A stretch of DNA of 62,387 bases, the filler included, from Dugesia japonica (Eukaryota): assembly GCA_001938525.1 (NCBI GenBank). It is 6 parts of 6 records of this genome, joined end to end, with 100 filler letters (N's around TTAATTAATTAA, not from the genome) between each part and the next. Parts side by side here need not be neighbours in the genome. Positions count along the whole stretch, not along the records: positions 25,395 to 34,382 come from MQRL01515411.1; 5 more parts are not named here. One strand, written 5' to 3'. Of the stretch, positions 25,395 to 34,382 are shown piece after piece. Position numbers and translations under genes: made by a program. The number at the start of each line of letters is the position of its first letter. Position 1 is the stretch's first letter. The notes beneath the pieces were generated by a model. That model searched no databases, was not told the origin of the DNA, and saw only the letters and a list, made by a program, of their open reading frames with translations.

Positions 25395-26295
25395 TTGAGT
25401 GGTCTCGAAACAAGATTAATTCTTCTTTGATGGAATTCATAAATATTCCAAAATTTGAAAAATGTTGTCATTAATATTGGAAATTATTTGTAAGAAAAAT
25501 TTACATTGACTTTTTTGATTGTCATTCATTTTTTAAATCGTAAAAATTATATGTATTAGGTGTACAAGTATGACACCGTGATTTTTACGATTTAAAAAAT
25601 CAATAATAATGAACAAAAATTANNNNNNNNNNNNNNNNNNNNNNNNNNNNNNNNNNNNNNNNNNNNNNNNNNNNNNNNNNNNNNNNNNNCTTCAAACAAT
25701 TCATGAAACCATACATAAAAAGTAATAAAACAAACATAAATACAAACTATCTTGCAAAATGAATAGTCATAAACCTATTTTCATCACAGCAGCGTGATAA
25801 ACTAATAAAAATCTGGATACCGATTAAAGAACATCATGTTGCGTAAAGAATTTTTACAAAAATCTTACGGTGAGTAATTATTATCACATGCAATTTTTAA
25901 ATAAAATATTCTACTGGTATTTCTAATATTTTGTTGAAAATTGATCAAACAATATAATATCATGATTTTATAATTCCGTAAAATTGTGATACAGAATAGT
26001 ATAACTTTCATTTAATTTTTATGCTTCTTTATTTCATAAATGTACTCATAAACGTCATAAATTATTTTTAAAATGTTCAGTTGTAAAACAAAAATATTTA
26101 TCATTAAAAATCAACAAAATAAAATTATGTTAATGTCGGAAAAATAAACTGAAAAATCTTTTGTTTTACTCATTACGCCGAGAAAACTTAAATAATATTC
26201 CAAAAAATATTATAACAGACCAGAAATATAAAACTAGAAACAGGAAAAGTTATTGATTTTACCACATGCTAAAACAATATATAATTATTTTATAC

Positions 26296-26441
26296 CAGAT
26301 TGTTTGAATGTAGTGGATTTTGTGCCCCAATACACAAAGAATTTGTCATTAGAGGAACACTAGAGGTCAGAGGCCAAACATTTTGATTATTAGTTGATAA
26401 CATAGTTTGTTGTGTTAATGGATATCTGACAGTTGATATTC
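26296..26441 (-). CDS. RBFOX: Rbfox/fox-1 homolog, post-RRM exon
   Basis: After a 46-bp GT-AG intron; open frame (G)ISTVRYPLTQQTML...NPLHSNNL; donor CTG|GTATAA; phase fits the previous exon. Confidence 0.72.
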
Positions 26442-26487
26442 CTAGAATTTTAATAAAACAAATTATAATATTTGATTCATTTAATAC

Positions 26488-26536
26488 CATTTTCAACTTT
26501 CTTTTTTGCTATCATTCGCGCTGTTGCCACATTTAT
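26488..26536 (-). CDS. RBFOX: Rbfox/fox-1 homolog, end-of-RRM exon
   Basis: TTAG|INVATARMIAKKKVEN+G|GTATT, matching Rbfox VNNATARVMTNKK. Confidence 0.9.
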
Positions 26537-26899
26537 CTAAATATTTAATTAAAATTGTTGTAAAAACAGAAAACACAGTAGAAATAAACAGTTTATTTTA
26601 TAATGAGAATTTTAATTAAAAAAATAGCTATATCTAATGCATTTTTGTTTTTAATTTTTGTATTATCATGTTAAAATTTCAATGGTGTATCNNNNNNNNN
26701 NNNNNNNNNNNNNNNNNNNNNNNNNNNNNNNNNNNNNNNNNNNNNNNNNNNNNNNNNNNNNNNNNNNNNNNNNNNNNNNNNNNNNNNNNNNNNNNNNNAG
26801 GATTAAAGTAAATTAAAATGTAACTATTATCATTAGTATTTTAATTTTAACTGCCTTAACAATAACCAAGACAGGTAAAAAGCTTAATTTTATTAAAAT

Positions 26900-27580
26900 A
26901 AAGTTTGGACTACAATTTTATCTTCTTCGACTAATCGCAAAATAACCGATTTGATCTGATTGAATTTGAAGCATTTATATAAATCCAAATTGTTAGTATG
27001 CAGTATCCTTTGTCATCATTCATCATTGAATGTGATCCAAAAAGCAACACTTATTTCTTTTCCTTCTTTATCTCTCTGCTCCAATAGTATCGAGACTGAC
27101 ATCTATATCTAATATAATTTTTTTGTTTATGTCTAGAAAACACAATATTGGCTCAGTCAAAAGTATCGTTTATTTCATCTGTCCATTCTAACTTCTTGTT
27201 GCTTGGTCCACTACATAACTGTTCTAAAATCCTTGATTTTCTTGTATAGTTCTCTAGAAACGTCCTGTAGTAATTACAAATTAATAAGAAACTTCGTAAT
27301 TTCTTCACACAGTTAGGTTTGCCAAATGTTTTTGTTGCTTCTAATTTAGACGGATCAGTTNNNAGCCCCATGACTGCTAATAATGTGTCCAAGAAATTTG
27401 ATTTTGCTTTGAAGAAGCTGACACTTTTCTGGATTTATTAATCCCGTAAATACTATGTGAAATACTTCATAGTGTTTATCTTTGAGCCATTTGTAAGGGC
27501 CACTCCAGCAGCATCCACGATATTTCAGAATAGGTCAATATTCCTAGCAGTAATGATCAAAGAATTGTTACAAATGAACA
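26900..27580 (-). mobile_element. Gypsy RT/RNase H fragment in the Rbfox intron
   Basis: KPNCVKKLRSFLLICNYYRTF...LEQLCSGPSNKKLEWTDE; closely similar to 48867-49181. Confidence 0.85.
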
Positions 27581-28249
27581 TTTCAGACTTATTTCCATAA
27601 GGACATATCCTCTTATTTCAGATGATCAGAATGTTATTTCCGAGTCATTTCAAGAAATAACATTAGAAGCGTATCTAAGTTTNNNNNNTCTAAGTTTAAT
27701 AAAATTTTGAAATTATTATGAGGGCCGAATAAAATCAAACAACGGACTGTACGTTGCACATATATAAATTGAAATTTATCAAGAATATTTATTTAAATTT
27801 GTTTTCTCTCCCTATATATACAGGTTTATNNNNNNNNNNNNNNNNNNNNNNNNNNNNNNNNNNNNNNNNNNNNNNNNNNCCTCTTATTTCAGATGATCAG
27901 AATGTTATTTCCGAGTCATTTCAAGAAATAACATTAGAAGCGTATCTAAGTTTTCAAGGTCTAAGTTTAATAAAATTTTGAAATTATTATGAGGGCCGAA
28001 TAAAATCAAACAANNNNNNNNNNNNNNNNNNNNNNNNNNNNNNNNNNNNNNNNNNNNNNNNNNNNNNNNNNNNNNNNNNNNNNNNNNNNNNNNNNNNNNN
28101 NNNNNNNNNNNNNNNNNNNNNNNNNNNNNNNNNNNNNNNNNNNNNNNNNNNNNNNNNNNNNNNNNNNNNNNNNNNNNNNNNNNNNNNNNNNNNNNNNNNN
28201 NNNNNNNNNNNNNNNNNNNNNNNNNNNNNNNNNNNTAATATCAACTTAC

Positions 28250-28342
28250 TTCTATTCTACGCCCTTCGACTTCTTTTCCGTTCAAGTCGTCTCTAGCTTT
28301 CGCTGCATCATCTCCATTTGCAAAAGTTACAAATCCAAACCC
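28250..28342 (-). CDS. RBFOX: Rbfox/fox-1 homolog, 93-nt RNP1 exon (second half of RRM)
   Basis: TTATTAG|GFGFVTFANGDDAAKARDDLNGKEVEGRRIE|GTAAGT; exactly 93 nt, phase 0-0; matches Rbfox [31 protein letters not shown]. Confidence 0.95.
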
Positions 28343-28482
28343 CTAATAAATCGAAATATTGTCTATCATTATAATTTCACATCAAAACAAACAATTGTCA
28401 CAAAAAATTACATTAATCAAAGCATAAAATTAAACTAAAAAACGAGTTAAATTTATGAAGTATTGTGAGAAAAAATAGATTT

Positions 28483-28713
28483 CATGCAAACCATGCTGCG
28501 AAAAAACAAATCAGAGGATAGAAGAATATAAACAATCACATAACAAACACTAGAATAATCACTCCATTTGACCACAAGACGGCTTAAAATGATTTAGATC
28601 TAGTATTTATTACAGGTATTAACACGAAATCTTATGAATAGTGGCAACTAATAGAAATGCTGAGTCTAGATATGATGCATCTAATCAGTTAATATGGTCA
28701 ATAAACGCATGCA
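28483..28713 (-). promoter_or_regulatory. Cluster of Rbfox-binding (U)GCAUG elements
   Basis: On the transcribed strand: TGCATG at 28713-28708, GCATG at 28496-28492, TGCATG at 28488-28483, in the intron upstream of the 93-nt exon. Confidence 0.6.
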
Positions 28714-30754
28714 ATAAATTCCCGACATGAACATCAACACAATTATCTATCAAAAAACCAAAACAGCATCTACTTCATTCCATATATAATATTAACTACT
28801 GCTAGATACATGTCCATTACTGGCATCAATATCAGAGTAGCAAGCTAATAAGAAATTGAACATTCCGCAGGCATTATATAGAAATACCGCAAAACGACGC
28901 AGAATCCATTACCTATATTCAATGAATAGTCCCTGAAAATTTCTGAAATTGTAATATTTACATAATTGACCAATGTAAACATATTAAAATTTAAATAGAC
29001 TAGCAACAAATCAATATTTTGTCAATAAATGAAAAATTACCGAATAAGCCTTTGAAATTTAATTTTAAATACTTAATAATAAAATAAATTGTTTTTCAAA
29101 AAATTTTGACTAAATTTTTAATTTAAATTTATAAAATTTTTCGTTAACATCCATCATTAAACACAAGTTAATTATATATTTATTGTGAGGAATAATTAAA
29201 GATGATTTTTTAAAAACAATATTAAATTTGATAAATGATTTTTTTAATGTCATTTATTTAACATTGTTTTGAGTTTTACGTGAAGTTAAAAATTGTTACT
29301 ATTTTATTATTGTAATTGTTTATATTAAAGTTCTTTTCTAAAGTTTTGTAATAAAATTTTATAAACAATTTGCTAGTAAACTTTTTCCTTATTGTGTAGT
29401 CAATTTATTTAGGATATCTAGTAAAGCTGAACAATCTAATTATATATTTTTTGAAATATTGAGAATAGTTTATGTCNNNNNNNNNNNNNNNNNNNNNNNN
29501 NNNNNNNNNNNNNNNNNNNNNNNNNNNNNNNNTTCTTTCCATAAACATCACACATAGTTCTAACGGCTTTGAGACAATAACTCCTCTAGTTAAATAAAAA
29601 TATATGTTGGAAAAGACCGTATTTTTCTATTTGACACTTCATTTTCTTTGAAAATAATTTTATTGAAATTATTNTCAAATTCAAAATTTNTAAAANAATT
29701 CATTTAAACAATTAAGATAATAAGATAACTTTAACATATGCATTTTAATATTGTATTTTAAAGCACAGTTGCTTTACAATAAAAAAAATGCTACGGAATT
29801 ATGCATGAACCTAATATATATTGAATAAATACAGTGATGTTTCATTATATAAGGAATAATATTTTGTTTAACTTCTTAAAATTTCGCTTCATTAAAATTC
29901 TGTTTAACTGGAATAGCATCATCGATATTAAAAGACGTTATCCGTTAGTTTTATATATGTGAATCAAGTGTGATAATTTTAGAAAATCAATCAACTAGTT
30001 GCATGCATAGTATTTAAAGCACGTAAATTAAGTTTTTAATTAAATTTNNNNNNNNNTAAAAATGAAAATGACAGTGATTATAAAATAGGATTGCTTATTT
30101 CTATTGGTCTTTTGAAATTAGTAACGTGCTTTAGATTAGTCACAAAATTCAATAATGTAATCAATCTTCAATATGAAAATTAACTTTTCAGTTGTTAACA
30201 AATAAACATTAATTTTAATTTTTTTCCTTACTTTAAAATCTAATCAAGTATTGTTGTCAAAGTTTTGTTACATTTTTTCCAATAATAATGAATAAGAAAT
30301 TAATAGAATTCAATTTAACAAAAATATATACGAAATCAATATAAAATATTAAACAGCAACTGTTTCCACTTAAAAAATTATGTTTTTAAATATACCTCGA
30401 TAAGTTTTCCATTTGAATTTTGTTCCAAATATTCATTTTTTAAATTTAGTACAAAATTTCAACGAGAATATTTTGTATACCGTTTAAAACAGTAAATAAA
30501 ATGATTAGTTGCAGGATAATCAAATTTCCTTAAACATGTCAAAAATCATTAAGATATTATATTTTAATTTAAAAACCGAACCAACTATCGTGGTTACCTA
30601 ATATTTTTAGCGCTAAAATTTTTAATTCTTTTTATTATTTTTAATATAAGATAGAGTTAAGTATTAAAATTTATTAAATATTTAAGTATTTGTGTAAATT
30701 TAAATACTTGTTTAAATTTATANNNNNNNNNNNNNNNNNNNNNNNNNNNATATA

Positions 30755-30776
30755 TGTGTGTGTGTGTGTGTGTGTG
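30755..30776. repeat. (TG)n microsatellite
   Basis: Seen directly. Confidence 0.9.
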
Positions 30777-32836
30777 TATCATTAAATTAAAATGATCACT
30801 TCGAAACAATCTTCGTTAAATTAAAAACCTAATTATCATTATTTGTTTCTTTTTGACAGACCAATAATAATATTGAATTATATGAATATGAAAAAAATAA
30901 AATTTCCACAAAGATTGTTATTAAATAAATAGGATTAAATCATTTTAATTATTATTAAACATTTCTTTGTTTTCCTAGTAATTAGCTTTTTGGAATTAAT
31001 TATTCAAAGTTAAAAAATAAAATCAGAAGCGAATGTTATTAGAAAAAAGTTGTTACATGGTTGTCGGTTTTCGAATAGAAAAATATCGATTTAAGAATTA
31101 TACTATACAAAGCATTTAATTTGTTAGTTAAATATATTTTAAATGAGCTTTTGAGGATATGAAATGACAAATGTTCAAAATTGAAAATGACANNNNNNNN
31201 NNNNNNNNNNNNNNNNNNNNNNNNNNNNNNNNNNNNNNNNNNNNNNNNNNNNNNNNNNNNNNNNNNNNNNNNNNNNNNNNNNNNNNNNNNNNNNNNNNNN
31301 NNNNNNNNNNNNNNNNNNNNNNNNNCAACTTCAAGAAATGTAATCTTTGAAATCGATAAACACTCATTAATCTAACGGATAACGCGGAATAGTATTACTA
31401 ACTCAATTAGCATCGCAAAAAGGCAAAATTTTGATGATCCTAATAACTGCAAAAAATTAGGTTATTAGGAATTTTTATAATTTGAATCACTCAAATAGTA
31501 TCACCATNNNNNNNNNNNNNNNNNNNNNNNNGTATCATTGATACTATTCAGTGCTATCCGTTAATTTATTAGTATTTCTTTATTAACCTTAATCCATCCC
31601 CTATATTGACTACACACTTGAGCATTTTCAATCTATATAGAAATATAAAAAATTAATTGGTTTTTTATATTAGGTTTATACTTAAATCCATAACATTTTA
31701 TTTGAATTAAAAATTTCATGAATTGTAACAAAAGTACAAGTACTGATCAAGAAAATATATTCCTCCATTATTCAATATTCTTTCACAAAAATCCGGTAAA
31801 TTGTCGATTCCTTGGCTCAACAAATCCTTTGGTTTCGAAGCAAAGAAGTTATCAAGCCAATTCCGAAGCACGGTGTCGTTATCAAAAGAGATTCCTTGAA
31901 TATTGTTACCAAGAGATCGAAACAGATGAAAGCGATGTGAAATAACCTCCCAGCCAAGACACTGAATAACTNNNNNNNNNNNNNNNNNNNNNNNNNNNNN
32001 NNNNNNNNNNNNNNNNNNNNNNNNNNNNNNNNNNNNNNNNNNNNNNNNNNNNNNNNNNNNNNNNNNNNNNNNNNNNNNNNNNNNNNNNNNNNNNNNNNNN
32101 NNNNNNNNNNNNNNNNNNNNNNNNNNNNNNNNNNNNNNNNNNNNNNNNNNNNNNNNNNNNNNNNNNNNNNNNNNNNNGCAGATGGGTACTAGGTTTCATT
32201 ATAGTAGATGCTTTTTCTTAAATAATAAACCATTCTTTTCTCTTCTTGGTGTTCTCATAAAGGCACCCTTTTTCATAACCAATAACAAAGTGAGACAAAA
32301 AGTGTCGACGTTATTGACAAGTTAGCAATATGACGCAAATGTTGACACGATTATTTTTATTCATTTTTGTCAAAGCATGCGGCACATATATACCAAATTT
32401 TTGAGCTACACAATGGTTTTTAAATGTCGAACGAATACAATGAAAAATGAATCCACGAAAATTTTTTTGTCAAGAATTCTATTAACTAAAAATATAAGAA
32501 ATTAAAAATATTGAATCTTAATTGAAGATTAAGATTTGACATCAATGGATAAATTTAGCAATTACTTTAGAAATATTTGTAATTTTAAAAAAAGAAATAA
32601 ACTTTATAATTTCACCAAATCACGTTTGAAAAGGCTTTAGTAAAGAGCACAAAACTTTACGATAATTTGCTTCAGTAATTTTATGATTTCAGAAGCAAAT
32701 GAATATTATTCAACTGATATGATTAAAAACCGAATTCGAAAATTTAAGGATAAATATATACTTACATTTCTTCATTTTATTGTTATTTCTCTTTTATTTA
32801 TATATAATTTATAAATTTTTATTAATTAATTATTAC

Positions 32837-32890
32837 TTTCGATCCACGTTCGTTGAAGATTATTTCAACATCGAGTAACTGTCCATAGGG
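32837..32890 (-). CDS. RBFOX: Rbfox/fox-1 homolog, 54-nt RRM exon
   Basis: TTTAG|PYGQLLDVEIIFNERGSK|GTAATA; LDVEIIFNERGSK is diagnostic of Rbfox. The upstream RNP2 exon was not found on this scaffold. Confidence 0.95.
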
Positions 32891-33069
32891 CTAAATATAA
32901 AAAAATTAAGAGAATAAAATAAAATTATTATTATTATTATTACACAATTCACTCACTGACTCACTCCAGAAGGATTAAGTTAAAAAAATATTTTAAGCTT
33001 TTCATTTTAGGCTTTTAAATGTTAAGCTTTGAAAGTTTAAGCTCATAAATCATAATTTATACACTTAAA

Positions 33070-33500
33070 ATTTTCCAGTAATTTTGGTATTCTCTATGAC
33101 CATTAATAAGTCCCAAAAGGCCAATAATTTGATAAAGTTGGCGTGTATTTTCTTGAACCAGTTTTTGCTCATGTCCAAGTCCACGTTGCACTTACTCGCT
33201 GCATAAATTATGGACTTACTTTATCAAGGAAAAATTGTTAATGATCATCACACTTACGAAAAACCCAATTCATTCACTGACTCATTCTGGAACGCTGGCA
33301 CACGAAAAATTGAAAATTTTGTATAAGTGTGTTGGAATTAGCAAACTAATATACTATAACGGTTAACGGATATTTGAATTAGTTTGGGATGAAAAGTAGA
33401 TGTGATTAACCGTAGCCTTTTGTGTGAATTATAAGTAAAGTTACTAAATGATGAAAGATAATTTACTCGCAATGTTGTGTATACCGAAATAACTCAGCAA
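33070..33500 (+). mobile_element. Helitron RepHel helicase C-terminal relic
   Basis: FPVILVFSMTINKSQ, FDKVGVYFLEPVFAHVQVHVALTR and, after an insert, TRNVVYTEI: Pif1-type motifs V/VI and the typical Helitron tail. Confidence 0.8.
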
Positions 33501-34382
33501 ATAAATGCTAACGTTTCATTGTATGAATATTAAATTTTACTCCTCTTTTTTTAATTCAAACCAAAAATAATTTTGCAAAATATTGTCAATTTCAGATTGA
33601 CACTTAAGAATAAATTAAAAAATTATGGGCGCCTGAGAAAAAAACTTGTTAATAATAATAATCATAATAAATGTATTTGCTAAGCGTAAGACCAATAAAC
33701 TATTTTAAATGATTTAATAAAAATATCTATCTATTATCTTAAATATCTATTTTAAAGCTGCGATGATAATAATTTTGATAAATTAGACAAATGCTTTGTG
33801 TAAATACCAAAATTGCAAAATATTTACTTAACAAAAGTTAGACTTAATAATTTGTTTTTAATTTAGTCAACCTTTAGTTTATATTTTATTAAACTTTTAT
33901 TCAAAAAATGATTTCTTTTAAATACATTAAAATAGTTTGGAAATATTTTGATAATCAAGTTTTGGTTTTCTTTAATAAGACTTTTTTTAAATGATCGAAT
34001 AAATGATCACTATATAAAACTTGCATAATGAAAATTTGTAAAATTTCTTCAAAATATAGAACAAAAAAATATCAATATTGGAATCCTAAATTAAAATTAT
34101 TTAATTTAATAAAAATTAATGTAAATTGTAATGTGATTTTTAAACAATCCGTTTTAAAACATTTTTTTTAAAAAATTTGTAATTTATAATTTTTTTGTAA
34201 CTGAATTGGGAAAAAATTTATTTAAATTAATTTGAAGAATATTGTTAGAGAGATCAATTTGTAATTAAATTATTATCCAAACTTTTACAAGTAAATAGTT
34301 GTTAATTCTACTTTATTAGAGATTTATTAGAATTGATGACACAAAATATTTCAACAAAGCTGTAAGCAAAGCCTTTTTGATA

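Follow-up and report, generated by a model that had tools for sequence, protein, structure and literature searches.

Rbfox proteins set the splicing programmes of nerve and muscle, and their dose matters. Among the genes for RNA-binding proteins, those of the SR and hnRNP types carry ultraconserved poison exons, which are typically longer cassette exons, are targets of NMD and are self-regulated. To our knowledge, self-control of Rbfox outside vertebrates has been described mainly as skipping of a 93-nt exon that encodes part of the RRM. This 93-nt exon is reportedly exon 6 of Rbfox genes, with the 54-nt exon as exon 5.

The closest described system to the one considered here is exon 5* of Rbfox2, a 41-nt exon of mammals and birds located in intron 5, the intron that precedes the alternative RRM exon 6 (PMC3126832). 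Inclusion of exon 5* is enhanced by Rbfox3, and the exon accumulates when NMD is blocked by emetine, a translation inhibitor (PMC3126832). Rbfox3 also enhances exon 6* of Rbfox2 (71/74 nt), which likewise builds up on NMD block (Dredge & Jensen 2011, PMC3126832), and the action of Rbfox3 on both exons has been restated in a 2026 review (PMC13542418). Two further systems involve other splicing outcomes. Skipping of the 93-nt exon, in the account of Damianov & Black 2010 that is given in PMC3126832, yields an in-frame dominant-negative protein without half of the RRM. In C. elegans, FOX-1 acts on several GCAUG and GCACG sites in intron VI of xol-1, resulting in intron retention or the use of an alternative 3' splice site (PMC7787662).

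The window analysed is the whole 62,387-nt stretch of DNA from Dugesia japonica. An Rbfox-type gene on its minus strand is partly contained in positions 25395-34382. The 54-nt and 93-nt exons of this gene together encode an Rbfox-type RRM, and the 93-nt exon, searched singly against Pfam, matches RRM_1 (E=3e-9). The two exons are separated by a 4494-nt intron that harbours an alternative, stop-bearing exon with two acceptors. The parts of this splicing unit are as follows, with a slash for each splice boundary.

32890-32837, minus strand: 54-nt RRM exon, phase 0, translating to PYGQLLDVEIIFNERGSK; its donor feeds three alternative acceptors.
28942-28913, minus strand: major poison exon of 30 nt, acceptor tttcag/A at 28942, seen from loose ends of the 54-nt exon.
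28932-28913, minus strand: minor form, a 20-nt micro-exon, acceptor ttttcag/G at 28932, seen from loose ends.
28912-28911, minus strand: GT of the poison-exon donor, TAG/GTAATGG, used in the joint 28913>28342.
28912-28343, minus strand: 570-nt intron from the poison exon to the 93-nt exon, retained in most upstream-acceptor transcripts as judged by sense-strand depth.
28342-28250, minus strand: 93-nt RRM exon, the RNP1 half of the domain, translating to GFGFVTFANGDDAAKARDDLNGKEVEGRRIE.
Near 26536-26486 and 26443-26293, minus strand: two later exons, 3' of the 93-nt exon, placed by eye.

RNA reads with loose ends at 28246 mark the splice from the 93-nt exon to the exon that follows. A stretch of N at 28014-28235, immediately 3' of the 93-nt exon, masks any Fox site there.

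The original prediction was a 20-nt poison micro-exon with an acceptor at 28932 and a donor at 28913. The minus-strand text, ...aatttcag/aaattttcag/GGACTATTCATTGAATATAG/gtaatgg, matches it exactly, with the 20-nt unit at precisely 28932-28913. The GC-richer block that was said to begin here is real as well, GC being 0.28-0.32 over about 28245-28994 versus 0.16-0.22 deeper in the intron. A premature stop before RNP1 had been foreseen and is found in every variant, with at least two exon junctions further downstream. In the 30-nt form, AAA TTT TCA GGG ACT ATT CAT TGA is read in frame as KFSGTIH-stop. Inclusion of only the 20 nt causes a frameshift, and the stop then lies five codons into the 93-nt exon: GLFIEY is followed by AG+G GGT TTG GAT TTG TAA, that is R-G-L-D-L-stop, a junction translated by eye rather than from a joined spliced model. 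Forms that retain the following intron stop at once, as KFSGTIH-stop or GLFIEYR-stop.

Two other kinds of small exon were considered. A neuronal coding micro-exon (3-27 nt, frame-preserving) is ruled out by the in-frame TGA of the 30-nt form and the frameshift of the 20-nt form. A recursive splice site or exon is ruled out by the acceptors, which read cag/AA and cag/GG with no GT directly following.

Use of the sites was read from raw stranded RNA reads of oligo-dT libraries, in runs X20, X21, X22 and X24 from three studies; five RNA runs of the species were found (2026), of which these four were used. Reads were mapped to 28236-29673, and the 54-nt exon is therefore visible only as loose-end sequence. 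The joint 28913>28342, a GT..AG junction that skips 570 nt, occurs in every run: X20 has 2 such reads, X21 has 9, X22 has 8 and X24 has 1. The end of the 54-nt exon is attached at 28932 in 4 reads of X21. Both junctions expected of the micro-exon, 28913>28342 and 32837>28932 (the latter as loose ends in X21), were thus seen, and the exon is really spliced.

Acceptor 28942 is nevertheless the major one and 28932 the minor one: the 54-nt-exon end is attached at 28942 in 9 reads of X21 and 23 reads of X22. The canonical junction, recognised by the terminal 30 nt of the 54-nt exon at 28342, has 49, 62 and 15 reads in X21, X22 and X24. Together the two upstream acceptors take 13/62 (21%) of the 54-nt-exon donors in X21 and 23/85 (27%) in X22. 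The 20-nt exon of the original prediction therefore exists and is used, but only as a minor form, since the main acceptor defines a 30-nt exon that already contains a TGA in frame.

Sense-strand reads cover 28343-28955 to a depth of about 23-29. The 93-nt exon reaches 116-132, and upstream of 28956 the depth drops to 0-5. Depth over the block is thus about 0.2 of exon depth, on the strand of the gene. Block depth and joint counts together indicate that about two thirds of upstream-acceptor transcripts keep the 570 nt and about one third splice them out. Hence the predicted donor is used, but most of the transcripts concerned do not end the exon there. The donor at 28913 is weak and used inefficiently. 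The interval 28343-28912 behaves as a retained intron in that it persists in polyadenylated RNA from which the adjoining upstream intron has been removed, and read starts in the mapped region 28236-29673 show no clustering that would mark an internal promoter. Unproductive isoforms have a steady-state share of about 20-40% in poly(A)+ RNA in study P10. Their share varies between samples; by run it is about 0.2 in study P10 and about 0.03-0.1 in X24.

The reads also differ from the window at some positions. At 28649 and 28694 the window has T and A, and all X20, X21 and X22 reads have C and G instead. These mismatches are strain differences, and they fall in the middle part of the block, which is unconserved in the relative L001 described below. 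At 28743-28744 a few reads (3/25 in X21) carry an insertion of 4-5 nt (GAACA / CAAC), which may be an allele or an alignment artefact at a low-complexity spot.

Repeats are present on both sides of the 93-nt exon. Nested inverted repeats lie in the RRM-splitting intron, at 29781-29818 / 31666-31703 and at 29936-29965 / 31355-31384. The outer arm, which starts TATTAGGTT..., we take to be a mariner-type terminal repeat. The adjoining ORF at 31716-31871 (minus strand) has an ending that to our eye resembles mariner transposase; a Pfam search of this ORF gave no match to back a mariner transposase. RNA reads at 29388-29579 all contain mismatches and continue into inverted-repeat sequence at 29563, and they probably stem from other repeat copies. 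Downstream of the 93-nt exon, near masked stretches, 27609-27742 and 27880-28013 form a direct repeat of 134 nt with 96% identity, 271 nt apart. A 79-residue ORF at 27153-27392 (minus strand) presumably resembles the stretch of a gypsy-type retrotransposon between reverse transcriptase and RNase H. Pfam at E up to 1 returned nothing for this ORF, and it is regarded as a remnant because stops surround it.

Conservation could be followed in one distant relative. The 31-residue exon was searched against 1.84 billion representative proteins, yielding P0040, a read-through ORF with 87% identity within the exon. Its source contig, L001 (1053 nt, GC 0.36), includes 920 nt of the intron upstream of the 93-nt exon. 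Unconstrained intron is about 52-53% identical between L001 and the window, that is, not alignable. The coding 93-nt exon has 76% DNA identity, and of the 27 residues conserved in it, 17 are encoded by different codons. By comparison, identity is 88% over 28955-28905, a segment that takes in the exon together with its two acceptors and its donor, and the donor itself is unchanged. Beyond the donor lie further conserved stretches and Rbfox-type motifs:

28912-28838, minus strand: conserved flank after the donor, 66/72 aligned bases (92%) the same as in L001.
28789-28706, minus strand: another conserved island, 81% identical to L001, with a UGCAUGC at its end whose GCAUG is kept.
28499-28468, minus strand: conserved GCAUGGUUUGCAUGA doublet; the island is 81% identical to L001 and the doublet itself identical.
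28712-28708 (UGCAUG), 28496-28492 and 28487-28483 (UGCAUG), minus strand: GCAUG sites, from a scan of the sense strand.
28865 and 28780 (GAAUG) and 28845 (GCUUG), minus strand: conserved secondary Rbfox motifs, from the L001 alignment.

In L001 the longer form of the exon is 31 nt and reads NSLTGTVH-stop, with the same CAT TGA in frame, while the shorter form is 18 nt and reads GPFIE-stop. A 3-nt indel between the two acceptors distinguishes L001 from the window and leaves CAT TGA in frame, and all forms contain stops in both species. The splice sites, exon and in-frame stop are thus kept, at 88%, in this one related species. As judged from this relative, the acceptors, donor, stop, 75-nt flank and GCAUG sites appear more constrained than the adjacent coding exon. 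The single comparison with L001 likewise points to strong purifying selection on the elements of the module.

The nature of the conserved block was examined further. Relative to L001 the block contains 1- and 2-nt indels, which rule out a coding reading. Rfam at E up to 1 gave no match for the block. Its fold has a z-score of -1.0 and compensatory pairs are absent, and a predicted hairpin that would hide the 28913 donor was rejected on these same two grounds. The block is not repeated within the piece 25395-34382. Exact-pattern scans of metagenome contigs with the conserved block sequence gave no match, and a profile word search found no second relative carrying the intron. P0151/L002 and P0152/L003 were discarded; they are compact loci with closely spaced genes and were taken as bacterial. 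In L004:10001-10258 and L005:971-1234, which represent the nearest other clade (ANGDDA[LI]KARDDLNGRVVDGRKIE), the match to the window is confined to the coding exon. The 54- and 93-nt exons are fused there and the intron is absent, and therefore the poison-exon site cannot exist in these sequences.

The three downstream (U)GCAUG sites of the original prediction are present, 201, 417 and 426 nt past the poison-exon donor, and all three are kept in L001. The latter two form a doublet 141-154 nt upstream of the acceptor of the 93-nt exon. Within the 570 nt, 3 GCAUG were observed versus 0.75 expected (P about 0.04), a count only modestly above chance. The most conserved stretch, 28912-28838, is without a primary GCAUG. 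GAAUG and GCUUG are secondary Rbfox motifs that are active at high protein levels.

The original prediction had recognised no such micro-exon in described Rbfox genes, which does not hold given that exon 5* of mammalian and bird Rbfox2 (41 nt) occupies the equivalent intron (PMC3126832). Both exons lie in the intron immediately upstream of the 93-nt RRM exon, if the reported exon equivalence is accepted. Both introduce premature stops on inclusion, and each is conserved between species along with its splice sites. Exon 5* is enhanced by the Rbfox family and has been read as auto- and cross-regulation by AS-NMD, two features that we infer for the present exon. The two differ in that the present exon measures 30 or 20 nt, with two acceptors 10 nt apart, and that its major form has its own in-frame stop, whereas exon 5* causes a frameshift. 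In addition, most upstream-acceptor transcripts here also keep the downstream 570 nt, and the gene belongs to an organism outside the vertebrates whose genome is very AT-rich.

The remaining systems share fewer features with this locus. Skipping of the 93-nt exon involves the same architecture of 54- and 93-nt exons and Fox-type GCAUG near the 93-nt exon, and it is also an autoregulation that disables the RRM. However, that event is an in-frame skip giving a stable protein, while here sequence with a stop is added. The xol-1 case, which is dose-sensitive, resembles this one in having several GCAUG-type motifs in one intron, retention or another 3' splice site, and a non-productive mRNA. There the target is another gene and not the transcript of the regulator itself, and a poison exon is not involved. 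As in the SR and hnRNP genes, a stop-bearing alternative exon is found in the gene of an RNA-binding protein, and the exon and its flanks are better conserved than nearby coding sequence; NMD targeting and self-regulation are putative for the present exon.

The locus contains a conserved unproductive-splicing module in the RRM of Rbfox, which is most likely a negative-feedback dose sensor, and this reading is held with moderate confidence. The splicing choice itself is observed: the donor of the 54-nt exon pairs either with 28342 or, about 590-600 nt further upstream, with 28942 as the major and 28932 as the minor acceptor. When an upstream acceptor is chosen, the weak 28913 donor is joined to the 93-nt exon in about one third of cases, giving the 30- or 20-nt poison exon, and in the other cases the 570-nt piece remains in polyadenylated RNA. 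Rbfox may bind the conserved GCAUG sites, and possibly GAAUG and GCUUG, between the poison exon and the 93-nt acceptor. Such binding would act from downstream to help define the poison exon, impede the normal acceptor some 150 nt away, or both. More Rbfox would then lead to more dead-end RNA, either degraded by NMD or held in the nucleus.

Several lines of evidence are consistent with such a sensor. Conservation of the poison exon together with the (U)GCAUG sites is the pattern predicted by Rbfox-driven feedback. The precedents of Rbfox2 exon 5* (PMC3126832) and C. elegans FOX-1 (PMC7787662) count in its favour, as does the activity of the secondary motifs at high protein levels. Against it, the steady-state share of 20-40% in poly(A)+ RNA exceeds what would be expected of an efficient NMD target, and the unproductive share differs by run (about 0.2 in P10 versus about 0.03-0.1 in X24). 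The GCAUG excess is modest (P about 0.04) and the conservation comes from a single relative. Furthermore, the distance of two of the three GCAUG from the poison donor is 417-426 nt, with the 93-nt exon only about 150 nt away, and these two sites could instead serve skipping of that exon.

The last point leads to an alternative in which the module is real and conserved, another factor drives the choice, and the GCAUG sites serve the known autoregulation of the 93-nt exon. The doublet indeed sits 141-154 nt upstream of the 93-nt acceptor, a position usually tied to exclusion (10.1101/2025.10.28.685214), and a skipping isoform that depends on Fox sites occurs in mammals and Drosophila according to Damianov & Black 2010 as relayed by PMC3126832. 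The absence of a primary GCAUG from 28912-28838 fits another factor too, although this conserved flank does carry the secondary motifs GAAUG and GCUUG. The first UGCAUG, 201 nt downstream of the poison donor, is in the classical enhancing position, and in vertebrates it is the Rbfox family that drives the equivalent cryptic exon. The two roles of the GCAUG sites are mutually compatible. Control by another factor is a possible but rather doubtful explanation. It may also be asked whether the product is the purpose, namely a truncated Rbfox protein with the N-terminal region, RNP2 and the short tail KFSGTIH that would act as a competitor unable to bind RNA. The isoforms are abundant enough to suit this (a poly(A)+ share of about 20-40% in study P10), dominant-negative Rbfox isoforms without a complete RRM have precedent (PMC3126832), and the tail ends in ...GT(I/V)H-stop in both species. 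Yet the likeness of the tails follows nucleotide conservation, which continues at 92% for 75 nt past the stop into non-coding sequence, and the minor acceptor yields a different tail. A stop ahead of several junctions, or of a 600-nt retained intron, is moreover the usual signature of decay or detention, making a functional truncated protein improbable.

Splicing noise would require that cryptic sites in a long AT-rich intron are used occasionally and without function. In a crude consensus scan of the 4.5-kb intron, 6/317 AG..GT pairs score equal to the 28932/28913 pair, which from sequence alone is thus unremarkable and not beyond chance. Nonetheless, in one study 21-27% of transcripts use the sites, which are seen in 4/4 runs. 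The acceptors, donor and flank are 88-92% identical to L001, compared to about 52% for neutral intron, and synonymous sites have largely changed. The 76% identity of the coding exon argues against L001 being a very close relative or a contaminant from the same species. Noise is accordingly very hard to reconcile with the data, and a negative-feedback sensor of Rbfox dose is the reading carried forward.

The kind of element is already known, as an Rbfox-driven, NMD-coupled poison exon in the RRM-splitting intron has been described in vertebrates. New here are the non-vertebrate case, the tandem acceptors and an in-frame stop kept across species, along with the predominance of the retained-intron form and a flank that is better conserved than coding sequence. 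The gene model for this locus should include a non-coding isoform at a substantial level. The two acceptors, the weak donor, the near-invariant 75-nt flank and the three GCAUG provide a map of cis-elements in an animal where RNA interference may be feasible.

These results raise the question of whether Rbfox limits its own level through unproductive splicing, and whether the 570-nt piece, where retained, serves as a reserve of detained introns or is destined for decay. They also raise the question of whether the solution is ancient or has arisen twice in the same intron. That the module and vertebrate Rbfox2 exon 5* share one ancestral autoregulatory element is an unlikely but consequential proposition. 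If true, lineages with fused 54- and 93-nt exons would have lost the element, and control of Rbfox dose by unproductive splicing of the RRM would predate the split from vertebrates.
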